Part shown: positions 43,794 through 63,181 of the stretch, piece by piece
How positions within the stretch are numbered: position 1 is the stretch's first letter
How the letters are laid out: the number at the start of each line of letters is the position of its first letter
Sequence record: MN445185.1
Length of the DNA: 64,000 bases
Direction: 5' to 3' (one strand)
Program-made: the position numbers and the translations under genes
The notes under the pieces: model-generated
Told to the model about the DNA's origin: nothing
What the model saw: only the letters and a program-made list of their open reading frames with translations
Database searches by the model: none

Positions 43794-44002
43794 TGAATCT
43801 ACGTTGGCCGATCGCGGCTGCTGTGTTGTTTTGTATTTATATCGCCATCAGCACCAGTACCCGCACTGCAGAACGTCGCGAGACCGCAACCAGTACGTTT
43901 AGGATGTGCATTGACCGCGTAGACCCGAACAGTACCACTTATCCTGACGCGGTGAACGCGTGTCGCAAAGCGGTTGCTGAGATATTGAAAGAGGAAAAAT
44001 AA
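43793..44002 (+). CDS. Small single-pass membrane protein with Cys pair
   Basis: WPIAAAVLFCIYIAI TM segment; MCIDR...NACRK. Confidence 0.7.
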   Translation: MNLRWPIAAAVLFCIYIAISTSTRTAERRETATSTFRMCIDRVDPNSTTYPDAVNACRKAVAEILKEEK

Positions 44003-44229
44003 TGGAAAACCTTACGCCGATTGAGATAGTGGCGCTATTCGACCGTTACGTATACGGACAAACGCAGGCAAAGAAAATGCTGGCGATTGCGCTACGTAAT
44101 CGATATCGTGCCAATAAACTCAACGTAGTGGACCGTATGTCGGTCCACAAACAGAACCTTTTAATAGAAGGTCCAACAGGCACGGGTAAAACGGCGTTGA
44201 TGCGTGAAGAAAAACAGAAACAAAAGTGA
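44002..44229 (+). pseudogene. hslU: N-terminal fragment of HslU (ClpY) AAA+ ATPase
   Basis: LTPIEIV..FDRYVYGQTQAKKMLAIALRNRYR...NLLIEGPTGTGKT matches the HslU N-terminus; stops 11 aa after Walker A. Confidence 0.85.
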
Positions 44230-44237
44230 GGTAAAGG

Positions 44238-45245
44238 ATGGCGAAGCTCGTTTCGTTTTCAGCAGGGTTGGATTCCACCTGGATAATGTATCAGCTGCTA
44301 TGCAAAGCACCGGCCAATGAAGCACGACATGTCCGTCCTGCGTATTTCTCCATGTGGAATGGAGGTAACGCGAACTTCATGGAAATTCTTTGTAGCGTGG
44401 CCATTGTTGAACGGTTGATGGATAGACACCATGCACAAACCGAACATGTTACATGGGCGGTGCTCGGGGAAGAGAACTTCCAGCCTGTCGTTACCGCTGG
44501 ATATGCTAACGGCTGGTCGCCTCTGGTTCAGCAGGGCAATGTTGTTAACGGTCTCGCTAAACTGATGTGTGGTATTACGCGCAAACAGCACCACGCCTAT
44601 GCAGTTGTTGGTTGGAATAAGCTAGATGCGTTGGAGAATAGTCTAGAGCTGGGAGATTGGACATTAGACGAGTACGCTCGCTTAAAGAACCTCTATAGCG
44701 AATTGATGTATTTCCAAGATCATGCCGGTCGCGTTCCACCGCTTCTAACACCTGCGTGGGATAAAGAGAAACTGGAAATGTGGCAGGAGTTGCCGGAAGA
44801 TATTCGTAGGTTGGTACAGGTCAGTAACAACAACAACTACGAATTCGCGATAGACCGTGAGAATAACGTGCTCATCGTTTATGCCCATCCGTCGGCAAAG
44901 TCGCAGAATTATCGTAGTCTTGGTATTACACCGTCAGTGGGATGGGAGATTAAAATCAACGATGCTTACAGACGGGTATGGTGTTCTGCTCTCGGTAGTG
45001 CTATTTCTGCTATGGGTTTGGGCGTACCGGCTTTTGCTAACTTTAAGGACCCGGAAAGAAACCACACGACCTTTACGGTAAGTGAAGATACTAACCGGTT
45101 ATGTATCACATCGTTTACCGCGGAAGAGTGGTGCGCGTATGCGCCACATTTTAAAGCGCTTCAGGAGAAAGAAAAAGAGATAGCGAAAAATGCCAAAGCA
45201 AGTAAAGCTGTGGACGCTCCAACTGGCGAAGTGGCGGATAGCTGA
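44238..45245 (+). CDS. PP-loop (QueC/adenine nucleotide alpha-hydrolase-like) protein
   Basis: N-terminal LVSFSAGLDST (SGGxDS variant); LLTPAWDKEKLEMW. Confidence 0.7.
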   Translation: MAKLVSFSAGLDSTWIMYQLLCKAPANEARHVRPAYFSMWNGGNANFMEILCSVAIVERLMDRHHAQTEHVTWAVLGEENFQPVVTAGYANGWSPLVQQGNVVNGLAKLMCGITRKQHHAYAVVGWNKLDALENSLELGDWTLDEYARLKNLYSELMYFQDHAGRVPPLLTPAWDKEKLEMWQELPEDIRRLVQVSNNNNYEFAIDRENNVLIVYAHPSAKSQNYRSLGITPSVGWEIKINDAYRRVWCSALGSAISAMGLGVPAFANFKDPERNHTTFTVSEDTNRLCITSFTAEEWCAYAPHFKALQEKEKEIAKNAKASKAVDAPTGEVADS

Positions 45246-45573
45246 AAAACGGAATTTGCCAAAGCTGGATATAACGGTTAAGTCGGGGCTGAAATATTTG
45301 GCACCCGACTGGGACTTTCTGATGGACTACAAGAAGTCTGACAAAGGCCCCGACGCAGAAGCTGCGTATACCAAACGCTACCTGCAGAAACTTAGTCGGT
45401 TGTTTGATGAAGACACTGATAAGTTGATAGAGATTCTCCGCCAGGGCGAGGTCGTACTAATGTGCTATTGCCCACCGGGGAAATTCTGTCATCGCCACTT
45501 GCTAGTTTCTTACCTTATTGAAATCGGTGAGTGGTTCGGTTATGAAGTAATTTACATGGGCGAGTTATCGTAA
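45190..45573 (+). CDS. DUF488/YeaO-like protein
   Basis: DITVKSG, LAPDW, Y.KRY, VLMCYCPPGKFCHRHLL. Confidence 0.7.
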   Translation: MPKQVKLWTLQLAKWRIAEKRNLPKLDITVKSGLKYLAPDWDFLMDYKKSDKGPDAEAAYTKRYLQKLSRLFDEDTDKLIEILRQGEVVLMCYCPPGKFCHRHLLVSYLIEIGEWFGYEVIYMGELS

Positions 45574-45584
45574 GGAGAGTCCTC

Positions 45585-45980
45585 GTGAAATTGATTATGC
45601 CTAAAACCGTTCCTAATCAGGATATGGTTACGACTACACTGTTTTCTGAATCATTACGCAACTCTGTACGTCAGACCGCTTCACGTCTAGACGTGGCAGT
45701 TGAAGAACTCGACCCAGAAGTCTTCATGAAGTATGCGTTTATTGCAGAAGGTTACGCGATCGCCCTGAGTTATGCGCGGTATGTCGATGACGTGACAGAA
45801 GCTAAACGTTATTTAGAAGGCTGTTGTCAAGTTTTCCGTGAAGAAATCACCGAGATGGAGATGGTTGACCGTGGCTTACCTGAATTTGTAAAGGTGGGTT
45901 ACGATAAGCTGTTGCAATCCATCGCGGATGAGATCAAACGTCGCGGGTTAACTGTTGTGCACAGTGCTACACTGCACTAA
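45585..45980 (+). CDS. Hypothetical protein
   Basis: 131 aa, GTG start with AAGGAG RBS. Confidence 0.7.
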   Translation: MKLIMPKTVPNQDMVTTTLFSESLRNSVRQTASRLDVAVEELDPEVFMKYAFIAEGYAIALSYARYVDDVTEAKRYLEGCCQVFREEITEMEMVDRGLPEFVKVGYDKLLQSIADEIKRRGLTVVHSATLH

Positions 45981-45994
45981 CAGCGTACGAGTAG

Positions 45995-46036
45995 GCTACC
46001 ACACGATCATATGTGTGGTAGCTTATTTTTTTGTTT
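45995..46036 (+). terminator. Rho-independent terminator (loop contains TATG)
   Basis: GCTACCACAC-gatcatat-GTGTGGTAGC followed by a T-tract. Confidence 0.85.
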
Positions 46037-46048
46037 CTGGAGGCGTTA

Positions 46049-46588
46049 ATGGCAGACCGCTATCAGCCCGACCTAACACTGAGTTCAAAAGCGCTAGTCT
46101 TAGCGCTTATCAATCATGACAATAATCTGTCACTTACTGATAAAGAGATTGTGATTAGGGATATTGATGCGAACGCTTCACCAGACATCATCCCGAAGAA
46201 CACACAGGCAAGCGTGGCCAAAGCACGTAAGCCAAATGGGAAAACCGTGACAGTCTATTATGACCGGTTAAGTGCGTCTACCGTGCTAGACAGTTTTCAG
46301 CCGCTATTGGTGTCCTTAGACGGAACCGAAACGGACATTCAGCAAATTGCCAGTGTGATTAACGGTTACTGCGGTACAAACTTGTCAGCAGCAGACTTAC
46401 AGTCTGCGCCAATCGTGGTCAGCGACGATTTTACCCTGGTGAATATCACTGGCGATTCCCCAGCATGGCTTGGGACATTTATCGCAACCCTGTTTACCAA
46501 AAATGAGTACGTTCTTTCAACTGACACTGACACGGTGCTGTGTCTGGATGAGAACACTGTGCTCGTACTGACTGACGAGGAAGAGTAA
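46049..46588 (+). CDS. Virion adaptor, paralog-family N-domain only
   Basis: SSKALVLALINHDN, VTVYYDRLSA, INGYCGTNLSAADL, SPAWLG; acidic tail. Confidence 0.7.
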   Translation: MADRYQPDLTLSSKALVLALINHDNNLSLTDKEIVIRDIDANASPDIIPKNTQASVAKARKPNGKTVTVYYDRLSASTVLDSFQPLLVSLDGTETDIQQIASVINGYCGTNLSAADLQSAPIVVSDDFTLVNITGDSPAWLGTFIATLFTKNEYVLSTDTDTVLCLDENTVLVLTDEEE

Positions 46589-47073
46589 TGGCCAGCCCAG
46601 TTAAAAAGCAAACATTTGAGAGCTTACCATTTTATACCGATATCACCAACGTGAAAGATGGGATGTTCTTGTTTATCAAAGATGGGAAAGCGTATCAGTA
46701 CCCGCTCGAGATGTTGGGTGTCCAGAAGGTTGCTCAGGGTGTCGTTATTCGTGATGCGGCGTATGAGTTGGAAGCGGCAGCAGCCACTGATTGGTACCTA
46801 GGACTGTCGCAACCGGAAACCGATCTCACTATTAAACCTGATGGAGTATTGGGGGCATTTCGGTACACGCTCAACCTGACTATTCTTCAGGGAACGGGAG
46901 CCAACAAAATTAACTGGCCTTCCAACGTGAAGTTCCCCCATGATGCATACCCGGTGCTGTCGTACCAGAAAGGGAAATCGGACATGATTACCCTGACTAC
47001 AATCGACGGCGGTTACACCTGGAAAGGTGGCGTTAGTGGAACAGGATATACAGAATGGGTAGAAACTCCTTAA
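46588..47073 (+). CDS. Tail-fibre-associated small protein
   Basis: LTILQGTGANKINWPSNVKF...PVLS...G..D.ITL.T.DGG.TW.G, a motif seen in phage fibre/baseplate proteins. Confidence 0.6.
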   Translation: MASPVKKQTFESLPFYTDITNVKDGMFLFIKDGKAYQYPLEMLGVQKVAQGVVIRDAAYELEAAAATDWYLGLSQPETDLTIKPDGVLGAFRYTLNLTILQGTGANKINWPSNVKFPHDAYPVLSYQKGKSDMITLTTIDGGYTWKGGVSGTGYTEWVETP

Positions 47074-50072
47074 TCGCAGTACGGACAGGGATTAACAATG
47101 CCCTGTCGATGGCCTACGGTCATCAGGACTTCGTTCGTCGAAATACCGGCTTAACTAACGACGCCCACAATGACCATTATCTGATTAACCCAGAAGGGGT
47201 GCTATCTAATAACCGGCATTTCATTGCTGACTCCATGGCAGTGTATCAACCTAATGGTGACGCCACCACAGAAGGTCAATCGTTGCTGATTATTGGGTAT
47301 TGCCACATGTACATCGCTACCAAAAACCAGATGTGGTTAGATGCGGCGATTCGTGCATGGGAAGCGTACGCTACCTACTATTACGCAGGTCAGGCCATTC
47401 CTGAGTCACCGCAACGTTGGATTTGTAACTGGCTAGTTAACGGTAAAGAACCGGTGCTGTCAGACTATCCAGTGCATCCGTCCGAGCCAACCCACGGTGG
47501 TTACAAGTGTGTACCGGTGACGTTTACGAACGGGCGTTGCCAGATACCCCAAGGCGCACCATTCTTTGGTGAATATCTGAACAATTTCTTTTCTGCGCAT
47601 CGTGGCCATCCTACTTGGGGTGCGGTTAATGCCGACGTACAGAAAATTAAGGAATCGGAAGACGGGTTAATTGACTGGTCTAAAGTCCCTGATTACTTAA
47701 TCGTCAATCCAGAGAAACCTTACGATGTAAAAGCGTGGGTGGACTGGAACACGATGCTAAACGACCCAACCGGATATACACCAATGTGGGGCGGTTCTAC
47801 CTCGAAAGGTCCGTTGTACGAGCCTGACTGGTTTGTTGTGTGGACAGGTGAGAAGGTTCAGGATGGCGAGGTCATTGAATCTGGGTTGCCTGATGCCCAG
47901 AAAGGAACCGTACAATTAAAGGACACCAGTATCAACGGTGTGTATTTGATTAACTACGCTTCCCAGGTGCCAGTAGAGCACGGCGGGTATTTGTTTGGCC
48001 GTAATGAGCCATGGCACAACCGTCCTGTGCACACACCGTTAAAAGGCTCTGTCAACCAAATGGGTAACGCGGCAGATGCGGAAGTGTGGTTTATTGATGC
48101 CTGTTATCTGCTCTGGCGTATCACAGGTGAACCGCGCTATAAAGCCGCACTAGACTCTGTGTTCTATACAGCGCATGAATACACGTATATCGATGCGAAG
48201 GACAAGTTTTTCCGACGTTCTAAGCTAGCCGAAACACCATTTACAGATGGTATCTCGTACGACTATAAATACCCCAGCACTGTTGAGGTCGCTTACAGTC
48301 GTGATGAAAATGGTGATATTGTGTTCCGTTCTGAGAAAGCTGTGCAGAACTTTATGGAACAGCAAGCCGTGCGTTTCAGGATAAACAGTCAATCGAAGTT
48401 ACGTGTGACGTATGGCGGTGTTTGCGACAACGGTGATGCGCTTGCGTGTAAAGTGATGGTGGATATCAACCCCGTTAAAGCGGATACTGAAGAAGTAAAC
48501 TGGTACGGCTGTACGCTTCCAGGATCAACATCGATGGAAGTAAAACAGCATGACATCGGTTTAGGGCATCTGGCCAGAATGACTAATCCGGCCAACGGCG
48601 AAGATTACATCATTGCCGATGCGCGAGCATGTTCAGATTACGGTGGGTGTACGTGGCAGGAGAAGTTTGAGAGCAACATCTACGATGGTCGTTCAGGCAC
48701 AATCGTAGAAGCGTTATTCCCGAACGACGATGCGGGTTTCATTATCGGTTTCTGGTTAACCGATGCCGGTGTTGCACCCCCACAGTCAATTGTCTATCGT
48801 GCCGATGGTGATTTCAACTTCCGTTTCGAAGATACCGACAAGTGGCGTTGGTGGTGGATGTTGCCCGCGACTAACGGGGAATGGAAACAGGTTATTATTC
48901 GCCCTGAAGACGCAACACTCTCGGGCTATCAACCCGACCACGATACCGACGTCGAACCAAAACCGGCTGCGCCAAACTATACAACTATCGATCGGGTAAC
49001 CATACTGCCCGATTCGGCTGTGGAGAATGCGCACTTTAGCTGGTATTGCGTAAACGATGTTCCGCCACTGTTTAATGGAGACGATGGTTGGACGTTAACG
49101 TTCCGTATTGTAATTCGGGGAGGTTCTGCATTTACGGGTAAAGTGGGCGATTGTACGATAAAAGATTACCGTCTTGACTCGCTCGCGTATTGTCCAGGAA
49201 CGATACCGTTCTCGAACATTTATTCGGAAGGAACGTATCAGCTAGGTGCATGGCACGGGATGCCGTATCCTGGCTATCAGTATCCGTTTATGTACACCAT
49301 ACACACCGATGATCGCTACAAAGTCTGGCTCTTAAATCAGATTCGGTTTATGCACGATTCACAAACCAACTACCAGGCGCAGCTAGGTGAGTTAGGTCCA
49401 GGTTGTGCGGCGTATATTTGGAACCGTTGGGATAACTACTCTTACGGCCCGGCAGATACGTGGACAACGTTCCATTGGGGAGATGGACATCCGTGGGCAG
49501 GTTATCAGCCGCGCGCGTATAACGCCGCTGCGCGTTGTTGGTACGAATTAGTTGTGCGTGGTAAAGAGGTTCCACCTGAGCTAGTAGTGTACGTTGAAAA
49601 TTGGGCTAAGTGGCTCGTAGGGTTCTTAGACCGCTTTGACAACCACACTCCGAATGAATTCCCTACAGCACCAAATAAACCGGTATGGGTAGAGAACGAT
49701 TTCACAGCACATATGTGTGCGCTCTGGATAGCAGGCAGCGCTTATGCGGCAATGGCTGGCTGTACAGTGGAAGGGTTGAGCCGTATTATGGATATGGGGA
49801 TGAAAGAGATGGGTGACAACTTCACCGTCACAGACATTCCAGGAAAAGCCATTAACGGTGCCTGGTCTCCGTGGGCAAACCCTACCACGGATAACGGTCA
49901 GGCTTTTGGGTTTTATACTGGAGAAGCGATGCGTGCAATCGGGTTGTATCTCCTCTATAAAGAACACGGCCCAGGACATGATATTTATCGTGACTTGGCA
50001 ATACCCGACCACACAACAGCTTCACTCGATATAACGTTTACTATCCCAGACGATCCGCTCGAAACTAATTAA
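47055..50072 (+). CDS. GH8-like (alpha/alpha)6 glycoside hydrolase with CBM-like insert; probable virion appendage
   Basis: ATTEGQS (E73) and NAADAEVWFIDACYLLWRITGEPRY (D341) parallel BcsZ TTSEGQS and [25 protein letters not shown]. Confidence 0.65.
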   Translation: MGRNSLIAVRTGINNALSMAYGHQDFVRRNTGLTNDAHNDHYLINPEGVLSNNRHFIADSMAVYQPNGDATTEGQSLLIIGYCHMYIATKNQMWLDAAIRAWEAYATYYYAGQAIPESPQRWICNWLVNGKEPVLSDYPVHPSEPTHGGYKCVPVTFTNGRCQIPQGAPFFGEYLNNFFSAHRGHPTWGAVNADVQKIKESEDGLIDWSKVPDYLIVNPEKPYDVKAWVDWNTMLNDPTGYTPMWGGSTSKGPLYEPDWFVVWTGEKVQDGEVIESGLPDAQKGTVQLKDTSINGVYLINYASQVPVEHGGYLFGRNEPWHNRPVHTPLKGSVNQMGNAADAEVWFIDACYLLWRITGEPRYKAALDSVFYTAHEYTYIDAKDKFFRRSKLAETPFTDGISYDYKYPSTVEVAYSRDENGDIVFRSEKAVQNFMEQQAVRFRINSQSKLRVTYGGVCDNGDALACKVMVDINPVKADTEEVNWYGCTLPGSTSMEVKQHDIGLGHLARMTNPANGEDYIIADARACSDYGGCTWQEKFESNIYDGRSGTIVEALFPNDDAGFIIGFWLTDAGVAPPQSIVYRADGDFNFRFEDTDKWRWWWMLPATNGEWKQVIIRPEDATLSGYQPDHDTDVEPKPAAPNYTTIDRVTILPDSAVENAHFSWYCVNDVPPLFNGDDGWTLTFRIVIRGGSAFTGKVGDCTIKDYRLDSLAYCPGTIPFSNIYSEGTYQLGAWHGMPYPGYQYPFMYTIHTDDRYKVWLLNQIRFMHDSQTNYQAQLGELGPGCAAYIWNRWDNYSYGPADTWTTFHWGDGHPWAGYQPRAYNAAARCWYELVVRGKEVPPELVVYVENWAKWLVGFLDRFDNHTPNEFPTAPNKPVWVENDFTAHMCALWIAGSAYAAMAGCTVEGLSRIMDMGMKEMGDNFTVTDIPGKAINGAWSPWANPTTDNGQAFGFYTGEAMRAIGLYLLYKEHGPGHDIYRDLAIPDHTTASLDITFTIPDDPLETN

Positions 50073-50077
50073 GTGTA

Positions 50078-50120
50078 TACCAGCTATCCTTCGGGGTGGC
50101 TGGTACGCTTTATTTTATTT
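50078..50120 (+). terminator. Rho-independent terminator
   Basis: TACCAGCTATCC-TTCG-GGGTGGCTGGTA followed by a T-rich tract. Confidence 0.85.
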
Positions 50121-50143
50121 CAGATAGATGTTATCTCAGTGAA
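50118..50143 (+). promoter_or_regulatory. Early-type promoter, AGATAGATRTTATC class
   Basis: TTTCAGATAGATGTTATCTCAGTGAA, followed by hairpin CTCTGA/TCAGAG 50145-70. Confidence 0.7.
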
Positions 50144-50199
50144 CCTCTGAAATTTACGTTTCAATCAGAGCTTATGTCATGTATTAAGGAGCACTTAAA

Positions 50200-50532
50200 A
50201 TGTCTAAAGTCTATCACATTGCGGTATTGCGTCAGGCAACTGACCTTGAAAGCGACCGTGAACTTCGAATGCAGGAAGCCATTCTGAGCACTGTTAAAGA
50301 ACTTAACCAAGCAAACAATTTCGATGCACGCTTCGAAGCGTTACCAGTAAGCCGCAGTGCTTTCTACGGCAGTCAAATACTGGCAACCCAGTATGCGATG
50401 GCTTTAAGTGACTTGCGCAATAACCCTAGCCCAGAGACCGCGGCGAAGATGAACAAACTGTCGCTATGGATGAATAACCTGGATGTCCCCGCAGCATCCA
50501 CTGTAAGCGGTTTGGGGGTGGTCAATGGGTAG
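50200..50532 (+). CDS. Hypothetical early protein
   Basis: 110 aa, AAGGAG RBS. Confidence 0.75.
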   Translation: MSKVYHIAVLRQATDLESDRELRMQEAILSTVKELNQANNFDARFEALPVSRSAFYGSQILATQYAMALSDLRNNPSPETAAKMNKLSLWMNNLDVPAASTVSGLGVVNG

Positions 50533-50860
50533 AGTAATCCGTGTTGCCAGACCAATGCGTCTCAATAGGACACCAATGATAAATCGTGATATCGGTGAAG
50601 CTGTAAAACAGTTGTCGAATATCGACGGTTACACCTTTAAAGTGATAACACTGTACGACTACCCAGAAGGCAAAGTTCCGCAAGAGGCGCTGGATAAATT
50701 CGTTAATGTATTAGACGATTGCCTTAAGAGCCCAACGGACGTAAATCTTATCAAACTAAACACCATGTCCCTTGAACTGTACCGGCTGCGTAAAATGGGC
50801 ATTCATGCTCGCATCGGTAAAGGTGACCAAACGTTGGCCGAATACTGGGCTAAACAATAA
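50525..50860 (+). CDS. Hypothetical protein
   Basis: 111 aa, overlapping start. Confidence 0.7.
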   Translation: MGRVIRVARPMRLNRTPMINRDIGEAVKQLSNIDGYTFKVITLYDYPEGKVPQEALDKFVNVLDDCLKSPTDVNLIKLNTMSLELYRLRKMGIHARIGKGDQTLAEYWAKQ

Positions 50861-50887
50861 GCTATTTTAAATCCTAAGGAGCATTAA

Positions 50888-51406
50888 GTGAATATTATCA
50901 TGAACCTGTATACCAAACGGGAACGTAACGTTTTAGAATCTGGCGTTGCCCCGGAAGTATTGGCTGCGGGGGATATTAGTATCGACCCATTGAAAGTGAA
51001 AGTCGCAGAACTGTTCCCTCGCGACGAATGGGACATCTGGTATTTCCGTTGTTCGTCGGTATTGAATGCAATCAAACAACTGTCTGATTATCAACCTGGT
51101 CCGTATATCGGTACTTGGCACTGGTACGTTCCACGCACACCAAACTTCCTTTACCTGCACGACGATGATAAACGTACTCATATTCGCACTGTAGCGACGC
51201 CTGCGCGTTTGGAGCGTTATCTGGAGCTAATCCACGACCGGCCTCGTAACGAGCTGCAAAGCATCGTAGAGGTGCTCAGACAGGTACCTTTAGACGGTAT
51301 CCTGGAACTGGACATGAAAATCGCCGATCGTCCGAGACATTACTGGGAATTTTCCTGGGTAGACGCGAAGTACGAAAACCATAACGTTATCTATCTGAAG
51401 CGTTAA
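50888..51406 (+). CDS. Hypothetical protein
   Basis: 172 aa, AAGGAG RBS. Confidence 0.7.
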   Translation: MNIIMNLYTKRERNVLESGVAPEVLAAGDISIDPLKVKVAELFPRDEWDIWYFRCSSVLNAIKQLSDYQPGPYIGTWHWYVPRTPNFLYLHDDDKRTHIRTVATPARLERYLELIHDRPRNELQSIVEVLRQVPLDGILELDMKIADRPRHYWEFSWVDAKYENHNVIYLKR

Positions 51407-55643: not shown

Positions 55644-56441
55644 ATGTCTTTTACTTCAAAACAGAATCTGCTAAAACTCATCAACGAAGAGAATAAGATA
55701 AGCCCACCGCTTACCTTTGACGATGTTGATATCGGACTGCCGGAGGTTGTGTCAGTAGACGGTCGTGATTCGGAGGTGGTACTAACCTCGAAAATGCGCG
55801 GTGATGAAGGTACGCAAGTGATTGTGGACTACCATCGTCGTCCATTAGAGGACTACCTTACAGGCGATGTTGCCTTTGGCGATGAAGATGTGCATACCAC
55901 GCACGACTTACTCGCGGCGATTAACGAGCGTTTTAATCTGTCTATCTTACCTGAGGATATCGAAGATAACCCCATTGAAGGACAGACGCACACAGTCGTT
56001 GCTGTTGAAACTTCCCACGAGTGGAGAAGTCAAGCGGTCATCGAGCTGAAACCTGCTACACCTCTGGCAGAAGTAATAACCAATACAGAGTTGAGCGGTC
56101 TTCTGTACCCGGATCACCAGGACATCCAGTTGGGTCAGGCGTATATCTATTCGCGCGACATCGATTGTAGCCACATCTCTCGTTTCCTGAGCCTCTTAGC
56201 GGTCGGTATCGAAGTAGATGACACGGCGTTAGCAATCGAACTCAACAAATGTGTTCCTGAGATTTGGGTGGCTGAAGATACCCCATCCCCGTATAACTTG
56301 CGTGGTGCTACTGTCGTATTCGACGGCGTACCTGCAGACTTACCGGGAGCAAATACGGCGTTCGCGAAAGTCGTGTCAGTGCAACTGACCGATAAATGTA
56401 CGAACTTCCAGGGCAGCCTCAACTTACACTTTAACAACTAG
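55644..56441 (+). CDS. Virion structural protein, paralog array member 1
   Basis: SKQNLLKLINEEN, VDYHRRPL, INERFNLSI..EDI, LSGLLYP, QAYIYS..ID, YNLRGATVVFDG, C.NFQGSLNLHFN. Confidence 0.8.
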   Translation: MSFTSKQNLLKLINEENKISPPLTFDDVDIGLPEVVSVDGRDSEVVLTSKMRGDEGTQVIVDYHRRPLEDYLTGDVAFGDEDVHTTHDLLAAINERFNLSILPEDIEDNPIEGQTHTVVAVETSHEWRSQAVIELKPATPLAEVITNTELSGLLYPDHQDIQLGQAYIYSRDIDCSHISRFLSLLAVGIEVDDTALAIELNKCVPEIWVAEDTPSPYNLRGATVVFDGVPADLPGANTAFAKVVSVQLTDKCTNFQGSLNLHFNN

Positions 56442-56451
56442 GAGGGTATAG

Positions 56452-57294
56452 GTGTCTATTTACGATAAGCCCTCGAAAGAGATGTTGTTAGATGCTATTA
56501 ACCGACAGAACGGATTAACGGCCAATCCACTCACATGGGAGCAGGTTGCAACTGGCTTCCCTGAGTCTGTCCAAACGCCTGGCGCTGACCGGAATACACG
56601 TGTACTCTTATACGGGTTGAACGGCAAGGGCTACAAAGGCAACGTTACGCTCGAATACGACCGTATCGAAATGGAAATTCTGTTCAGGAACGTAATACCG
56701 GTAGTCGTTGCCGACCCGGTAAATAAACTCTCTGAGTTGTTGCCGTTTCTGAATGCGAAATACGGCTTGTCTTTAGTTGCCGATGATATCGTTGACCAGT
56801 CAGTAAAAGATTTGGGAGAAAGCTGGTTAATCGATGTGACTATTAAGCCCGGTTGCTTGGCCTGGCAAGGTGGTTTCCGTTTACGCTTTGCGAAGTTCTT
56901 CCCGAACCTGGCGGATGTGGTGACGGATGTTGACCTCAGCGCAATTATCGCACCGTTCGTGGTTGCTAGTAAACCGCAGGCTGAATATGTGGCGTATGGT
57001 TACGATTGGACTGAACTGCAAAAACAGTTCACTACCGATTGGGCTTACAACCGTGCAATCACTGCAGCGGATGTTGAGTTGTTGAATGAAGTGGTGCCAT
57101 TAAAGTTTGCATATGTGACGGGGGCGAATGCGCAACCTGAACAAATTGCACTCCAAGGTGCACGATTTATGGGGATAACTTCAGTCACACCGAACGATAG
57201 TTACAACCCCGATTATCAGCGTGTGGCGATTATCAAGCTAGCTGCGGACAGCAACTACGCCGGTAATCTCATCCTTCATTATCTCCCGATATAA
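56452..57294 (+). CDS. Virion structural protein, paralog array member 2
   Basis: GYKGNVTLEYDRI, LNAKYGLSLVADDI, YAGNLILHY. Confidence 0.8.
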   Translation: MSIYDKPSKEMLLDAINRQNGLTANPLTWEQVATGFPESVQTPGADRNTRVLLYGLNGKGYKGNVTLEYDRIEMEILFRNVIPVVVADPVNKLSELLPFLNAKYGLSLVADDIVDQSVKDLGESWLIDVTIKPGCLAWQGGFRLRFAKFFPNLADVVTDVDLSAIIAPFVVASKPQAEYVAYGYDWTELQKQFTTDWAYNRAITAADVELLNEVVPLKFAYVTGANAQPEQIALQGARFMGITSVTPNDSYNPDYQRVAIIKLAADSNYAGNLILHYLPI

Positions 57295-57304
57295 GGATTT
57301 TGAC

Positions 57305-58150
57305 ATGCCACTTTTAGCCACAGCTGAAAAGATTATTATCGCGGAGGTTAACGTCGAAAACAATCTCGACTTAAAAGTCGAGGATGTTGTTTTTGGTGTC
57401 CCTGCGATTCCAACGTCTGACGAAGACTTGGCAAAAGCTAACGGTCACAACGCGATGGTGCGTATTCAGGCATTGGCCACGGCTAATGCTATCGGTGCCA
57501 CTACCGTGTACTACGATCGTGTTGACTTCGCAGACATGTTTACCGATCCGGACGGGATTCAACCTTTACGTGTTCCTGCACGTCTCGATGCTGTTTACCA
57601 GATGCATGACGTGGTCGGGTTAATTAACCAGTATTACGGTCTCAGCCTTAAACCTGCAGATGTGGTGAATACCGAAATCGACAGGAAGACATGGCGTGTG
57701 GATCTGATTGCCACGCCCTCTTCTTTAGGTTGGATAGGGCAACAACAGGTACAGCTGTTACCAGGCGATGCGTTGCTTCCTGCAAACTTCGAACCCTTAA
57801 CAGTGATGCCTTACGAGTATCCGTATTTCAACATCAAGGTCGGTCAAGGTGCAGTTTATTCGTATCCCTGGCGCTTTGATAATTTCGCGGAGGAATTTCA
57901 ACGACTAGGTGCTGCGATAACCACAGAACGTCTGGCACAGATTCTCAAAACGGTCACCGGTGATAACTGGACAACATACCGTAACCCTATCGACTTTAAC
58001 CTTCGTGAAGCCGTCGTCGTCTATAACGGGCGTAACAAAGCGGAATTACCAACCAACCCAGCAGTCGACAACGTGCTGATTGTGGAGCTGTCGTTGTACT
58101 GTCTGAATTTTGGCGGGCGTTTGTATTTGCATTACAACGACCCTGATTAA
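57305..58150 (+). CDS. Virion structural protein, paralog array member 3
   Basis: TTVYYDRVDF, INQYYGLSL, SLGWIG, FNLREAVVVYNG, CLNFGGRLYLHYN. Confidence 0.8.
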   Translation: MPLLATAEKIIIAEVNVENNLDLKVEDVVFGVPAIPTSDEDLAKANGHNAMVRIQALATANAIGATTVYYDRVDFADMFTDPDGIQPLRVPARLDAVYQMHDVVGLINQYYGLSLKPADVVNTEIDRKTWRVDLIATPSSLGWIGQQQVQLLPGDALLPANFEPLTVMPYEYPYFNIKVGQGAVYSYPWRFDNFAEEFQRLGAAITTERLAQILKTVTGDNWTTYRNPIDFNLREAVVVYNGRNKAELPTNPAVDNVLIVELSLYCLNFGGRLYLHYNDPD

Positions 58151-58171
58151 TCCTGAGTAAAGGAAGTAAGA

Positions 58172-59083
58172 ATGAAACCTTTAAACAAAACGTCCGATAA
58201 GCTGGTTCTGGATTTTATTAATGAGAAAAACCCAGACGCAGAACTGGAACTTTCTAAAATAACGCTCGGCACACCGACCCCTATTACCGATGAAGGTGCT
58301 GATCGCAATACCAGCATGACCCTGACTGCGAAAAAGAACTCCGGGTACATCGGTACTCAGGACGTGACTTATAATCGCCTGGAAGGCGGTGCGCTGTTCC
58401 GTAATGTAACCGCATACCTCGACGTTAAACTGCCGAAAACCACCACCGACCTGCTGACGACCCTGAACACCCAATACGGATTGAAGCTGACCGAAGACGA
58501 TATCGTTCCGGCGGCTATTCCGGAAAATACCAACCCGCCGCTGACTAACCCGAACGATCCGGACCCAGCACCGGTTGACCACGTCATTACCTTCAAAGAA
58601 GACTGCTACGCTTATCTGGGCAGCATCCCGGTTAAAATCGGTGCTAAGCCTCAGGTTGGTGAACGTCTGAGTCTGGTGGTAACACAAACCAAGCTCGACG
58701 GCTTGGTTTACCCAGATGGTCCAAGCGAAGCGAAGGGTCAGGGCTACATCTACTCTTACGGTGTAGACTGCACAGCAATCGCAGCATTCCTGAAAGTACA
58801 GGCGAAAGGTGTTATCGCTGGCGACTCTGCATTCCCGGTTGAGCTGAATAAAGTTGTGCCGGAACTGTGGGTTGCATCTGATGAGCCTGCGGATTATAAC
58901 CTGAAAGGCGCTAACGTGTTGTACGTTGGTTCTACTACTGACGATGGCACTGCTTCAGGCGACGAACCTAAGAAACCGGTTGAAGGTGCAAACACTGCTT
59001 ACAACCAGGTTCTGCTGCTGCAGCTGGATGACACTCTGTGCACCAACTTCCAGGGTATCATGTACCTGCACTTTAATGCCTAA
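58172..59083 (+). CDS. Virion structural protein, paralog array member 4
   Basis: GYIGTQDVTYNRL, LNTQYGLKL, LDGLVYP, YNLKGANVLY, CTNFQGIMYLHFN; highly optimised codons. Confidence 0.8.
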   Translation: MKPLNKTSDKLVLDFINEKNPDAELELSKITLGTPTPITDEGADRNTSMTLTAKKNSGYIGTQDVTYNRLEGGALFRNVTAYLDVKLPKTTTDLLTTLNTQYGLKLTEDDIVPAAIPENTNPPLTNPNDPDPAPVDHVITFKEDCYAYLGSIPVKIGAKPQVGERLSLVVTQTKLDGLVYPDGPSEAKGQGYIYSYGVDCTAIAAFLKVQAKGVIAGDSAFPVELNKVVPELWVASDEPADYNLKGANVLYVGSTTDDGTASGDEPKKPVEGANTAYNQVLLLQLDDTLCTNFQGIMYLHFNA

Positions 59084-59092
59084 TTAGGCCTC

Positions 59093-59136
59093 GCTGGGAG
59101 GAGGAAATCCTCCTCCTGGCTACTCCTTTCTTTTTT
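59093..59136 (+). terminator. Rho-independent terminator (internal to array)
   Basis: GGAGGAGG-AAAT-CCTCCTCC followed by a T-rich tract. Confidence 0.7.
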
Positions 59137-59152
59137 GGCCGAGGAGGCTATT

Positions 59153-59992
59153 ATGGCTTTATATAGTCTGTCTCAGCGACAATATCTGTACGATGCGATT
59201 AATGCCGAAAACCCGGATGCTGTGCTACCGATGGGTTTAGACAATGCTATCATCGGCACGCCGAAAGCAATCACACCGACAGCAAGCGGTGCCAATACTG
59301 AGATTATCATTCGTGGTCGTCAAGGTCGTGGCTATATCGGTCCTCAGACGTTCCGTTATAAGCGCTTGTCGCTGAACGACTTATTTAAGAACATGACACC
59401 TCAGGTAACTGCACCGAATGCCTACGGTTGGTTGAACGTGGAGTCGAAACGTACTGCGTTTGCGCAGAACCTGAACGGTCGTTATGGATTAAACCTGGTT
59501 GCAGATGATATCCCAGAACAATACGTTTATCTGAACGTAAACAACACGATGCGTATTAACGCTAGCTGTATCCAATACACTGGCAGCATCACCTTTATGT
59601 CTATCCGGGGTAAGAATAGCCTCGAAGACCTCGTGGTAAACGACATCTTGTTGGCTTTGAACCACCCTGCAGCAGCAAGCACTGGTAAGAAATACATGGG
59701 CTTCTTGACGTACGGGGAAGACTTTACTGACGAAGTGCAGGTTATGGCCTCGTTTAAGAACGGGCGAATGGACGTAGGAAGTAACTTTGATTTGGGTTAC
59801 ACGTCCAATCTGATGGCCACATTGGTCGCACGTGGGGTACCGTCGTTTGATCCGACGAACTGCACAATTACCCGCTACAAAACGAGTGAGTTGGCGACCG
59901 CCAATAAAGCGTACGATAACGTATTGCTGATTACCGGCATTCAGAACGACCCGAAAGTAATCGGCGAGTGTATGTTGCACTACAACAACTAG
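59153..59992 (+). CDS. Virion structural protein, paralog array member 5
   Basis: GYIGPQTFRYKRL, LNGRYGLNLVADDI, ANKAYDNVL, CMLHYN. Confidence 0.8.
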   Translation: MALYSLSQRQYLYDAINAENPDAVLPMGLDNAIIGTPKAITPTASGANTEIIIRGRQGRGYIGPQTFRYKRLSLNDLFKNMTPQVTAPNAYGWLNVESKRTAFAQNLNGRYGLNLVADDIPEQYVYLNVNNTMRINASCIQYTGSITFMSIRGKNSLEDLVVNDILLALNHPAAASTGKKYMGFLTYGEDFTDEVQVMASFKNGRMDVGSNFDLGYTSNLMATLVARGVPSFDPTNCTITRYKTSELATANKAYDNVLLITGIQNDPKVIGECMLHYNN

Positions 59993-60002
59993 GAATTAGC
60001 GA

Positions 60003-60890
60003 ATGGCTATTTATCAACCTTCTAAAGACGTCCTGTTGGCAGCAGTGAACGCACAGAACTCGCTTGCTGTTAAGATGACTGACATCATCTGGTCCTCGCC
60101 AAAGGACATCCGTGGTACGGAGAAGGAAACGCTGACTAACCGTAACACGCAAATTAAAATTACGGCAGATGGGGTAACGGGCTCTACCTGGTCGGGTAAG
60201 AAAAATGTCTTCTACAACCGCATGAAAGTCGAAGACTTGTTAGTGCTGATCGGTGACACGTTGGCGATCGGCCCATCCAACGAAACCTTGTATGCGGCCA
60301 TTCCTGGACTGAACCAACGTTACGGTTTTGTTCTGGAAGAAGCTGACCTGCAGGACGCAGATATCGAATGGAACGGTGATAAGACCGAAGGAACTGTGCG
60401 CGTTGTTGCACATCCGGAGTCTATCGGTTGGGTTGGACAGGCGACATTTAAAGTCGTGAAAGGTGATGAGTCGTTAGTCTCTGCAGTCACCACTAACGTC
60501 CTGACCGGTCTGAAATACCCGAACGGTCAGATGGGTTCCGAAAATGTTACTGCGGTCATTGCAGAGGTTTATTCCTACCCGTACAACTTCACCAAATACC
60601 GTGATACTCTGCTGGCATACACGCCAGGTATTCTGTCCGGACAGCCGTTGACGGATATGGTTAACATGCTGAAATATATTACGGGTACGGCATGGGTAGC
60701 GACCACCTCCGCTTCCTACGGTTTGGCGGGTGCGGAGGTTATCAGCGTTGGTCTGAATGACCCTGTTGCAATGCCGACAAACGCGAAGTACAAGTATGCG
60801 CTGGTGTTGAAACTGCCTGTTACCTGTACCACCATCGTCGGAACGTTGTATCTCCAGTTCAACGATCTGGACGATCCAAGCGAGGTATAA
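60003..60890 (+). CDS. Virion structural protein, paralog array member 6
   Basis: PSKDVLLAAVNAQN, VFYNRM, LNQRYG, SIGWVG, LTGLKYP, GTLYLQFN. Confidence 0.8.
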   Translation: MAIYQPSKDVLLAAVNAQNSLAVKMTDIIWSSPKDIRGTEKETLTNRNTQIKITADGVTGSTWSGKKNVFYNRMKVEDLLVLIGDTLAIGPSNETLYAAIPGLNQRYGFVLEEADLQDADIEWNGDKTEGTVRVVAHPESIGWVGQATFKVVKGDESLVSAVTTNVLTGLKYPNGQMGSENVTAVIAEVYSYPYNFTKYRDTLLAYTPGILSGQPLTDMVNMLKYITGTAWVATTSASYGLAGAEVISVGLNDPVAMPTNAKYKYALVLKLPVTCTTIVGTLYLQFNDLDDPSEV

Positions 60891-60893
60891 TTG

Positions 60894-61721
60894 ATGATCA
60901 ACTATGCTAAGCCGTCAAACGAGTTGGTCTTTGACCTCATTAACCGGGATAACCCAAACCTACCTATTAAAGCGTCGCCGGCAAACTGCTACGTGGAGAA
61001 AGTGACGCAGGTTCCCGTTAATGCAGCTTCCAACAACCGCAATACGTCGGCACGCTTGCGCGGTATTCAGGGTTCCGGATTTCGAGACGCAATCACCGTT
61101 TACTACGACCGTGTGAACTTAGCGCGGTTATTGCCGTGGGGTCCTTCTGTTCAGGCGCAGTTCGTCACGTTTGACGCGCCCAACCTCCACTCAGCCTTTT
61201 CGGTGCTCTTGGATACTTACGGAGTAAACTTCTCTGCAATCGATATCTATAACCTCCCACTGGCGGGTCCCAATACCCCAAATTACACCAATACACAGAA
61301 CATCGTAGCGCTATCGACATCTCCGGCTTATATCGGTTCTGCGACGTTGCGTTATAACCGTGGTTTACCGGTACTAGATACTTCGGTGAAAACGGATGTC
61401 TTGAATGCGATTCAAGAGCCTATTTCACCGTCTCTCGGTAAGAAGTGTATTGATTTGTTGACGTACGGTATTGACTTTACCGCGTATAAAAACCTACTGA
61501 CAGTAGATGCTTCTGGCCTACCGCAGTGGGCTGGTTTGCGTAAGGTGTTGGATGACCTGGGTATTCCGAACTACGCGGGGCCACTGAACAGTAACACCGT
61601 TCAGGATGTGCCGACATCCACCGCTCAGTTCGCTAACAAATCGTACGACCGCGTGGTTGTCCAAACGGGTATCGATGAGGAAGGCGTGAAAGGCGTGGCG
61701 TACTACCACTATAACAGCTAA
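60894..61721 (+). CDS. Virion structural protein, paralog array member 7
   Basis: PSNELVFDLINRDN, TVYYDRVNL, YGIDFT, ANKSYDRVV, AYYHYN. Confidence 0.8.
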   Translation: MINYAKPSNELVFDLINRDNPNLPIKASPANCYVEKVTQVPVNAASNNRNTSARLRGIQGSGFRDAITVYYDRVNLARLLPWGPSVQAQFVTFDAPNLHSAFSVLLDTYGVNFSAIDIYNLPLAGPNTPNYTNTQNIVALSTSPAYIGSATLRYNRGLPVLDTSVKTDVLNAIQEPISPSLGKKCIDLLTYGIDFTAYKNLLTVDASGLPQWAGLRKVLDDLGIPNYAGPLNSNTVQDVPTSTAQFANKSYDRVVVQTGIDEEGVKGVAYYHYNS

Positions 61722-61726
61722 GTGTA

Positions 61727-61751
61727 GGGGCTCTTCGGAGCCCCCTCTTTT
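61727..61751 (+). terminator. Rho-independent terminator
   Basis: GGGGCTC-TTCG-GAGCCCC followed by a short T-tract. Confidence 0.75.
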
Positions 61752-61768
61752 GGCGATGCGGAGTCCCT

Positions 61769-63181
61769 ATGCTATTTTACTCGAAGGAGTCGGCACTGCT
61801 TGTATACGACCAAGTCAATCGGGATAACCCTGATTTAGTTGTTAAGCTGACGCCGGCTATCGCTGCTTTAACCAGTGGCCCAACTTCAGTTACGTTAAAC
61901 CAACGTAACACCAAAGCTGTTTTCACCGGGTATCCAGGGACAGGTGTACAAGGTAATGTTACCGTGTACTACGACCGGATTAACCTGGCCTCTTTATTTA
62001 ATTTTGTGCCGACTGTGGCTATCAAAGATACAGTCTTAACGGTACGAGACGCGCTACCTGCAATAAACAACGCTTTGGGGCTTACATTAGTTGCTTCTGA
62101 TTTGCAGTCACCTGACGCAAGTTTACCTAAACCGAGCGCTTCGCCGCAGACGTTGAAATTAAATATCTCAGGTAATTGCCCTGCGTTTACAGGCAGCTTA
62201 ACGATACGTTATACCGTCCCGAGCGGTGCAATTTACCCCGATTCTGGACCTGGCCCTAAAACGTTGCTGCAAGGTAACACTATCGCGGGTTATTTCGGAA
62301 CAACCACAATTGCAGAGTTGTTTACACACTCTCAACTTCTTAATGCCACTATATCGGCCGGTGCGTTACCACCGGTACATTCTGGTGCCGAAGGTTGGTA
62401 CAAGTTCTTTTACCAGGGTAGGGTTATTTACCTTCCGATCAGTCCTGTCGCTAGCTCCATCTCCTGGAATACGTTATATACAAACGGACTCGTTTACGGA
62501 ACAGATGATAATGGTAAATACCCTGCGGCGACGCCCGTTAACCAGGGACGCATCATTAGCTTTACAGGCGCAGACAACAAAAGGTTTTACTTCCGTGTTC
62601 GTCTACCTAGTGCCGGGAAAGACCCATACGTCAGCGGCACCCCAACTGCCGCTGAGTTAGCAGGTAGTGAGTTTGAGATGTTCAACTTTCTGTATAATGG
62701 AACGTGGGACAAACCGATTAACAGTTACTGGACGCTGTTCTGTTTATTGAAAGATACACTGAAGACCAACGTCGCCAATCATCGCATGGCGACGTTGTCT
62801 GGAGCAAGTTGGACAAACTTAGAAAAATCATCGAGTGCGGGCAACTACTACTGGTTCCCGGTGCTGGAGTTGGTGGATAAGTCCACAGTTACCTTGGGTT
62901 TAGAAGATATCCATGGTGCGGTAGATTACAGTCTCCAACCGTGCAGCGTGTCCGCAGAAAACACATTTAGTCTCAAGCCGTTAGTGCTCGGTAATCCGGA
63001 TACTACCGATTTCGAACCGGTAGTTGTTACTTCAGAAAACAGTTTCGCACTGCATCCGCCTGCTTTAATGCTGCCGAAGACAGTCGACTTCCAACCTATT
63101 GCGGCTACCGCTGAAATGTATACGCCCCCTGACAAGACAACGTTAACGTCTCTTAACGGTGAACTGGACGGCTTTAAGTAG
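61769..63181 (+). CDS. Tail fibre/receptor-binding candidate: paralog N-domain plus a different C-domain
   Basis: N-domain motifs (VTVYYDRINL, INNALGL) fused to GYFG...WYKF...SW..LY..GLVYG...WFPVLEL domain. Confidence 0.7.
   Translation: MLFYSKESALLVYDQVNRDNPDLVVKLTPAIAALTSGPTSVTLNQRNTKAVFTGYPGTGVQGNVTVYYDRINLASLFNFVPTVAIKDTVLTVRDALPAINNALGLTLVASDLQSPDASLPKPSASPQTLKLNISGNCPAFTGSLTIRYTVPSGAIYPDSGPGPKTLLQGNTIAGYFGTTTIAELFTHSQLLNATISAGALPPVHSGAEGWYKFFYQGRVIYLPISPVASSISWNTLYTNGLVYGTDDNGKYPAATPVNQGRIISFTGADNKRFYFRVRLPSAGKDPYVSGTPTAAELAGSEFEMFNFLYNGTWDKPINSYWTLFCLLKDTLKTNVANHRMATLSGASWTNLEKSSSAGNYYWFPVLELVDKSTVTLGLEDIHGAVDYSLQPCSVSAENTFSLKPLVLGNPDTTDFEPVVVTSENSFALHPPALMLPKTVDFQPIAATAEMYTPPDKTTLTSLNGELDGFK

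Follow-up and report, generated by a model that had tools for sequence, protein, structure and literature searches.

Here we describe three genes, g1, g2 and g3, at positions 46,049 to 50,072 of a 64,000-nucleotide stretch of sequence record MN445185.1 (the window). The window belongs to Escherichia phage vB_EcoM_EC001 (EC001; MN445185, 240 kb), an SPN3US-like jumbo myovirus to which 46000–50100 is 100% identical; the same interval is 96–98% identical to other Seoulvirus (SPN3US-like) jumbo myoviruses. The three genes are orthologues of SPN3US gp122, gp123 and gp124, with the same locus, order and flanks. A first-pass annotation, made by a model from the letters of the window, had described them as an adaptor, a connector and a cellulase-like enzyme of glycoside hydrolase family 8 (GH8). 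Our results indicate that the module proper consists of two genes, g2 and g3. We hold with moderate confidence that this pair is a portable tail appendage in which g3 is a glycan-binding, probably glycan-cleaving protein of an undescribed family.

The large protein had been predicted to be mounted on the virion, and published SPN3US proteomics establishes this location for gp124, which is 97% identical to g3. Orthologue gp124 (113.7 kDa) yielded ~177 peptide-spectrum matches (PSMs) in wild-type virions compared to ~7 (6.7) in tailless particles, gp123 (16.5 kDa) yielded 18 compared to 0, and both are classed as 'Tail' (PMC10052503 Table S2). Computing PSMs per kDa from the published table, we obtained 1.55 for gp124, 1.11 for gp123 and 0.39 for gp122, values that would fit near-equimolar amounts of gp124 and gp123 with little gp122. 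Our literature search found no published discussion of gp124 and no published function for gp122–gp124. By profile comparison, g3 matched PHROG 2871, 'tail protein', with E 0 and 1505 bits (residues 6–993 on profile positions 113–1070 of 1456). That profile reaches past g3 at both ends, and five metagenomic proteins of ~1690 aa (P0013–P0016 and P0025) are long versions of g3 with a C-terminal extension that contains Big_2 Ig-like domains. GenBank labels for the family are almost always 'tail protein' or 'tail fiber', with two records that say glycosyl hydrolase, and structure matches in BFVD were to family members, named 'tail fiber' at best.

The pairing of g2 with g3 recurs in unrelated phages. 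In EC001, g2 matched PHROG 9017 (phrog_9017) with E 8e-32 (residues 3–154 on profile positions 11–158 of 159) and is 41% identical to SPN3US gp123. Automated annotation labels it Phi92_gp140, a small 'tail fiber protein', and in the phi92 cryo-EM paper gp140 is listed simply as a putative fibre protein to which no place was assigned. Over its C-terminal ~80 residues, g2 shares 41% identity with the product of the gene directly 5' of the g3 homologue in a Pseudomonas P2/HP1-like prophage and 35% with its counterpart in a Rosemountvirus, and a g2-like C-terminal domain lies directly upstream of the g3 homologue in 21 of 31 full-length genomic loci. Gene order in the Pseudomonas prophage is Baseplate_J, gpI-like, g2-like, g3-like and tail fibre. 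No g2-like gene was found upstream in Serratia loci; at the only one of these with open reading frames (ORFs) listed, in Serratia proteamaculans (L020 3473–6766), the g3 body lies within a single 1097-aa ORF that has an N-terminal extension of ~176 aa, and family members of 1097 aa carry Pfam PF09684, Tail_P2_I. A g2-like gene was likewise missing upstream at nine further loci (L017, L018, L021–L024, L026, L028 and L034).

This arrangement, in which the C-terminal domain either stands upstream of g3 homologues or is exchanged for a fused attachment part, is the pattern of a portable appendage, and on the basis of this pattern we propose that g2 is an adaptor that would dock g3 on the tail; contact between the two proteins we infer. 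A parallel is the baseplate wedge protein gpI of P2 (Tail_P2_I), a fibre attachment point: the g3 body at L020 is fused to an N-terminal extension, and members of the same length carry Tail_P2_I, whereas EC001 has no such fusion and its attachment presumably runs through g2. Two loci differ in setting. In Salmonella phage SPLA2, a Rosemountvirus, the cassette (L042 11792–15372) sits between head–tail joining and tail body genes rather than in a baseplate cluster. On a contig labelled 'MAG: Bacillota bacterium' (L029), a g2-like gene that is 99% identical to the Rosemountvirus one adjoins a g3 homologue; the contig probably comes from a Salmonella/Escherichia phage and was misassigned during binning.

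To describe the fold of g3 we ran AlphaFold2 with a 42-sequence alignment of homologues of 44–83% identity and obtained a model with a mean predicted local distance difference test score (pLDDT) of 88.6 and a predicted template modelling score (pTM) of 0.85. The model contains 11 long helices arranged in hairpin pairs (residues 2–29, 72–89, 92–109, 340–357, 360–375, 756–777, 817–834, 841–860, 885–901, 908–921 and 952–971), one short helix, and two beta-rich regions at residues 110–335 and 377–755. Based on this model, we predict that the core of g3 is a split six-hairpin (alpha/alpha)6 toroid assembled from three separated parts of the chain and interrupted by the two beta-rich inserts. The sequence motifs on which the first-pass annotation had relied all occur at the residues it gave: ATTEGQS at 70–76 (E73), NAADAEVW at 338–345 (D341), ACYLLWRITGEPRY at 349–362, FRFEDTDKWRWWWMLP at 589–604 and GEWKQVII at 608–615.

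Conservation follows the predicted architecture. Both E73 and D341 are invariant in the 42 homologues and stand at the starts of alternate helices, with D69, E73 and Q75 invariant at the start of hairpin 1 and N338, D341 and W345 at the start of hairpin 2. At the starts of helices 72, 340, 817, 885 and 952, 5–7 of 10 positions are at least 90% conserved, compared to 0–3 of 10 at the starts of helices 92, 360, 841 and 908. Such alternation is expected of a six-hairpin barrel whose pocket lies where the inner helices begin, and the conserved residues would mark this pocket in the model. As D69/E73, N338/D341/W345, Y817/R820, H886 and F953/E957 fall where the fold places a sugar pocket, g3 most likely binds, and probably cleaves, a glycan; both catalysis and substrate we infer.

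We compared the model with experimental structures using Foldseek against the PDB. The whole model matched the GH48 cellulase CelF with a probability of 1.0 over 330 columns and GH116 beta-glucosidases with E ~1e-4 at template modelling (TM) scores of 0.13–0.17; all matches of the whole model were weak and composite. Because the helical core is discontinuous and the inserted sandwiches muddied this search, the contiguous C-terminal piece (residues 735–1005, 271 aa) was modelled separately, with a pLDDT of 76. Nearly all of the 50 PDB matches listed for this half-barrel are (alpha/alpha)6 proteins, including GH48, GH116, transcobalamin, AGE-type epimerases, GH8, GH76, GH88, GH105, GH63 and a polysaccharide lyase; no match reaches significance (best E 0.066), and the best TM score, 0.49, belongs to GH76 at a root-mean-square deviation of 4.8 Å over 228 columns. 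These comparisons support the fold class and no single family. Of the barrel that the first-pass annotation had anticipated, the prediction supports the class: a helical core of (alpha/alpha)6 type in which conserved acidic residues open some of the helices. A beta-helix tailspike depolymerase was considered and rejected: AlphaFold2 gave a helical core with sandwiches, and no tailspike appeared among the PDB matches.

A carbohydrate-binding insert had also been suggested near a Trp-rich segment of g3, and the model agrees, with predicted beta-sandwich inserts that gave weak matches to carbohydrate-binding modules (CBMs). In the whole-model search these were CBM11, at a target TM score (TMt) of 0.52–0.54, and CBM22. 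Residues 456–592 (48420–48830) contain zero invariant columns. The overlapping region 518–672 matched PHROG 23426 (phrog_23426) with E 1e-45 and is a module common to other tail fibres, among them an Erwinia MM7 tail fibre with 44% identity over 182 columns. Inside this module lies the Trp-rich stretch, residues 589–615 (48819–48899), in which W597, W599, W601 and W610 are each kept in at least 95% of sequences.

The proposed kinship with GH8 did not survive sequence comparison. In Pfam, Glyco_hydro_8 (PF01270) gave no match to g3 at E<=1 and none to any of the 42 family members at E<=10. A phmmer search of g3 against all PDB chains (E<=1) returned no match, and hmmsearch with the 42-sequence profile and a C-terminal profile against all PDB chains (E<=10) returned no GH8 and one chance hit only. 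GH8 was not among the top 50 whole-model Foldseek matches listed. The sole structural GH8 match, 4q2b, a Pseudomonas putida endoglucanase, came 25th in the half-barrel search, with E 0.6 over 146 columns, and was preceded by GH48, GH116 and epimerases. The GH8 endoglucanases (BcsZ of enterobacteria and Pseudomonas, CelA of Clostridium) share with g3 its predicted (alpha/alpha)6 class and a conserved Glu and Asp at helix starts; the searches yielded no alignment that would equate E73 and D341 with the GH8 acid and base. Unlike the compact GH8 domain, the predicted g3 barrel is cut by two large inserts of ~225 and ~380 aa, and the protein is 1005 aa long and tail-borne.

Other enzyme families came closer and stopped short of assignment. 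Among the 42 members, Pfam at E<=10 gave recurrent hints of GH47 (4 members, E>=0.24) and GH76 (2 members); the best of the latter, E 0.0016 in homologue P0043, reached 18.3 bits against a gathering score of 25.9 bits and corresponds in position to the E73 hairpin. When 30 members that are divergent or short were scanned against Pfam, only sub-threshold matches emerged, to GH76, CBM_5_12 and C5-epim_C. The best structural neighbours of g3 are GH48 (Cel48F/ExgS, probability 0.99–1.0), GH116 beta-glucosidase, which shares the layout of beta-sandwich plus barrel, and GH76 alpha-1,6-mannanase, which combines the best TM score with the recurrent Pfam match; all of these remain below significance or the Pfam gathering score, with no alignment that establishes equivalent catalytic residues. 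In a profile search among proteins of 149–474 aa for stand-alone barrels, we recovered only fragments of the g3 family. Across 1.84 billion representatives, an exhaustive HMMER scan yielded 371 proteins at E<=0.001; all of the 150 matches listed look like g3 family members, many of them fragments or multi-domain proteins. By these searches the family appears compact and self-contained, and by the tests run it would fall outside every described glycoside hydrolase family.

The same structural matches raise the prospect that g3 acts on a glycan by other chemistry, as a polysaccharide lyase or an epimerase/isomerase-type (alpha/alpha)6 enzyme on an acidic exopolysaccharide. Half-barrel matches include polysaccharide lyase 5noa, the GH88/GH105 unsaturated glucuronyl hydrolases and AGE/cellobiose 2-epimerases, and the sub-threshold C5-epim_C match comes from a distant family member, P0206. 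The invariant residues H886, R820 and Y817 would also suit such an enzyme, as lyase chemistry often involves His, Arg and Tyr. The lyase and epimerase matches do not surpass those to hydrolases, none of them is significant, and the Pfam hints go to GH76 and GH47; we regard a lyase or epimerase as improbable.

Homologues of g3 are widespread. Searching with tblastn, we found them in 529 phage records, near full length in 520. Identity to g3 is 97% in Seoulvirus, 78% in Erwinia phage Asesino, 55–57% in 84-kb phages (phiEa104, SE5), 45–47% in Rosemountvirus, 43% in 121Q/PBECO4, 41% in Phapecoctavirus-type phages, 39% in 4MG/SSE121, 36% in 'tail protein I' of Serratia PCH45, 30% in Vibrio phages and 26–27% in Vequintavirinae (26–30% for the last two together). 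Identity of 40–60% is kept over ~1000 aa among phages of Escherichia, Salmonella, Erwinia, Pseudomonas, Acinetobacter, Aeromonas, Serratia and other hosts. When species-representative genomes were scanned by pattern, 34 prophage loci with g3 came to light, almost all of them from Gammaproteobacteria (Pseudomonas, Serratia, Acinetobacter, Aeromonas, Stenotrophomonas, Halomonas and others). Conservation of this kind across hosts looks enzyme-like, and its reach across genera points to a target that would itself be conserved rather than variable.

Several observations bear on what this target may be. TraDIS (transposon-directed insertion-site sequencing) in S. Typhimurium found susceptibility to two Seoulviruses, SPLA1a and SPLA5c, whose g3 is 96% identical, to depend on lipopolysaccharide (LPS)/O-antigen genes. 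In the same study, the cellulose-synthesis genes yhjL, N, Q, R, S and U were susceptibility genes for SPLA2, which carries the g2-g3 cassette with a g3 that is ~47% identical, and this dependence keeps cellulose on the list of candidates. SPLA11 is LPS-dependent according to its authors; its g3 homologue is 97% identical to that of SPLA2 (31 differences), so the cellulose phenotype is not tied to g3. An attempt to map the difference between SPLA2 (cellulose) and SPLA11 (LPS) to g3 does not resolve; their tail fibres are 97.7% identical, and the largest difference lies in a Big_2-rich tail protein. The BASEL authors noted that conserved genes of the Vequintavirinae fibre locus probably target conserved glycans and proposed enterobacterial common antigen (ECA). 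Since the g3 family also occurs in Pseudomonas, Acinetobacter and Vibrio phages, ECA would not be a general answer.

With these phenotypes the specific proposal of the first-pass annotation can be weighed: that g3 is a BcsZ-like GH8 endoglucanase acting on biofilm (phosphoethanolamine-)cellulose, in which E73 would be the catalytic acid and D341 the signature Asp of GH8. Among the Gammaproteobacteria that host phages with g3 family members, the ability to make cellulose is widespread. The invariance of E73 and D341, the common fold class with 4q2b among the half-barrel matches and, circumstantially, the need of cassette-bearing SPLA2 for cellulose-synthesis genes are what this proposal would explain. 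It is opposed by the failure of every Pfam, PDB sequence and profile search to find GH8, by the better placing of other families in the structural comparisons, by the split barrel, by LPS-dependent SPLA11 with its nearly identical g3, and by SPLA1a and SPLA5c, which show no bcs dependence. We therefore consider a GH8 cellulase very improbable.

The main rival to a glycan-cleaving g3 is a non-catalytic appendage, that is, a lectin-like receptor-binding or structural tail protein. Several points weigh against our preferred interpretation. The predicted barrel has no statistically significant fold match (half-barrel best E 0.066; whole-model TM 0.13–0.17), and (alpha/alpha)6 toroids include non-enzymes such as transcobalamin, itself among the matches. 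Across Pfam, NCBIfam and PDB chains, g3 has no sequence match, to a known catalytic family or otherwise. TraDIS on the g3-carrying SPLA1a and SPLA5c returned LPS/O-antigen and no other glycan pathway, and in the literature searched we found no activity or binding data for any member of the family. Like the missing family match and the presence of transcobalamin, the prevailing 'tail protein' and 'tail fiber' labels suit a non-catalytic role, as does the combination of a variable sandwich (456–592) with a module common to tail fibres, which is typical of receptor-binding proteins. However, 40–60% identity from Escherichia to Acinetobacter and Pseudomonas phages would be unusual if g3 did nothing but bind a receptor, its invariant residues (acidic, His, Arg and aromatic) cluster at alternate helix starts as in active-site pockets, and two GenBank records name a glycosyl hydrolase. 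On balance we judge a purely non-catalytic role rather unlikely.

Under the interpretation that we prefer, a glycan-binding and probably glycan-cleaving g3 on a dedicated adaptor, the phage-specific N-terminal part of g2 would sit on the tail, and the variable N-terminal helix of g3 would be gripped by the conserved C-terminal domain of g2. The toroid would carry the second g3 insert as a variable, Trp-rich, CBM-like sandwich. The target may be a surface or matrix glycan common to many Gammaproteobacteria, and its engagement would help the virion reach its main receptor. A bolder version, which we put forward tentatively as a possibility, is that g3 represents an undescribed (alpha/alpha)6 family of glycan-cleaving enzymes with a dedicated adaptor, carried by hundreds of phages from P2-like to jumbo and directed at a shared glycan such as cellulose/phosphoethanolamine-cellulose, poly-N-acetylglucosamine (PNAG) or conserved LPS core. 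If this were true, the bcs dependence of cassette-bearing SPLA2 would be a first phenotypic trace.

The first gene stands apart from this cassette. As the first-pass annotation had noticed, g1 contains only the N-terminal domain of a paralogue family encoded at 55–63 kb: it matched positions 3–151 of the 276 positions of Pfam DUF7941, compared to the whole profile (1–276) for the ORF at 60003, and BLASTP aligned it with the N-terminal ~165 aa of the ORFs at 57305, 60003, 60891 and 61769 (E 2e-6 to 6e-5). This array corresponds to SPN3US paralogue family B, which consists of head proteins, with gp122 a suspected additional member (PMC5694885). We conclude that g1, which is 49% identical to gp122, is related to DUF7941 and family B without being a full member. 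Orthologue gp122 (18.8 kDa) yielded ~7 PSMs in wild-type virions compared to 0 in tailless (head) particles and is classed as 'Non-virion' (PMC10052503 Table S2). Homologues of g1 occur in 32 phage records only, all SPN3US-like or related jumbo phages (compared to 529 for g3), and there is no counterpart upstream of the Rosemountvirus g2-g3 cassette, on which grounds we rejected g1 as part of the portable module. The adaptor role once assigned to g1 passes to g2: g2 behaves as an adaptor, and g1 is restricted to SPN3US-like phages with a 'Non-virion' orthologue. Taken together, g1 is a lineage-specific half-copy of a head-protein paralogue outside the portable cassette, and may serve as a low-abundance accessory. 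The array itself (55644–63181) is a tandem run of at least 7 co-directional ORFs of 265–470 aa, of which those tested carry DUF7941; the half-length relative g1 lies ~9 kb upstream of it.

Comparing EC001 with SPN3US, we identified a 935-bp block, 46159–47093, with no nucleotide similarity inside and flanks that are 95–96% identical on both sides. The block extends from around codon 37 of g1 through all of g2 and into the first ~13 codons of g3. Its replacement in SPN3US leaves g1 49% and g2 41% identical and makes the first ~13 codons of g3 different, in a g3 that is 97% identical overall. Exchange of these parts of g1, g2 and g3 as one block suggests that they may work together. Two other phages, JN03 of Salmonella and Lh1B of Escherichia, have the EC001-type allele, and its presence in JN03 indicates that the allele does not simply follow host genus.

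The gene layout had been described as a set of coupled genes bounded by terminators, which the coordinates bear out (Table 1). The stop and start codons of g1 and g2 share one base (TAATG), the overlap between g2 and g3 is 19 nt, and a ribosome-binding site (GGAGG) and the ATG of g1 come 3' of the upstream hairpin. The two flanking hairpins are the only terminator-like sites on the + strand within 45000–51000, and for both, 0 of 200 shuffles were equally stable. The upstream hairpin closes the preceding transcription unit. Scanning the + strand over 45000–51000, we found no sigma-70-like site 5' of g1.

Table 1. Features of the g1–g3 region, in window coordinates. AF2, AlphaFold2.
Feature	Coordinates	Strand	Basis or description
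Upstream terminator-like hairpin, then T-run	45989..46028	+	17-pair stem; -24.3 kcal/mol, z -6.18
g1, 179 aa	46049..46588	+	ORF; SPN3US gp122 orthologue; N-terminal half of DUF7941
Allelic replacement block relative to SPN3US	46159..47093		Nucleotide comparison
g2, 161 aa	46588..47073	+	ORF; SPN3US gp123 orthologue; PHROG 9017
g2 conserved C-terminal domain, residues 73–151	46804..47040	+	Kept upstream of g3 homologues in unrelated phages
g3, 1005 aa, 114 kDa	47055..50072	+	ORF; SPN3US gp124 orthologue; PHROG 2871
g3 residues 1–109: variable helix 2–29, conserved loop, predicted hairpin 1 (72–89, 92–109)	47055..47381	+	AF2 and conservation
g3 residues 110–335: predicted beta-rich insert 1, 28 invariant columns	47382..48059	+	AF2 and conservation
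g3 residues 336–376: predicted helical hairpin 2 (340–357, 360–375)	48060..48182	+	AF2 and conservation
g3 residues 377–755: predicted beta-sandwich insert 2	48183..49319	+	AF2 strands, PHROG 23426, CBM11/CBM22 matches
g3 residues 756–975: predicted C-terminal part of (alpha/alpha)6 core	49320..49979	+	AF2, Foldseek and conservation
Downstream terminator-like hairpin, then T-run, 6 nt past g3 stop codon	50078..50105	+	-21.8 kcal/mol, z -6.13

Upstream of the three genes, a 75-aa ORF at 44002–44229 ends in a P-loop, GPTGTGKT, and has sub-threshold Pfam matches only (AAA/ResIII/T2SSE); it looks like an N-terminal fragment of an ATPase. At 45190–45573 lies a DUF488-N3a family protein (E 7e-12), the first 56 nt of which overlap the 3' end of the 335-aa ORF before it. 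Among related genomes, the match of SPFM1 (LR535901) and SPFM9 (LR535907) to 46000–50100 is broken into ~40 pieces per record, and the annotations of SPFM9 and SPFM12 list small pieces of g3 as proteins in their own right. This fragmentation probably reflects sequence-quality indels and not real gene decay.

Virion-borne glycan-degrading enzymes decide the passage of phages through capsules and biofilm matrix, and to our knowledge nearly all of those described are serotype-specific beta-helix tailspikes. Like the P22 tailspike, the K1F/phi92 endosialidase and the phi92 gp150 colanidase, g3 is virion-borne, would be expected to act on host surface glycans, and appears to be attached via a small N-terminal part or adaptor; in 4MG and SSE121, its homologue adjoins a gene annotated 'colanic acid degradation'. 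The enzymes named are trimeric beta-helices or beta-propellers that vary with host serotype, whereas g3 is a predicted alpha/alpha-toroid with beta-sandwiches that is conserved across host genera. The g3 family sets itself apart by this predicted core, by its cross-genus conservation and by its presence in 529 phage records and many prophages. Defining its fold, pocket and tail position would add a new enzyme or lectin family to phage–host biology and would account for a gene whose present label says no more than 'tail protein'.

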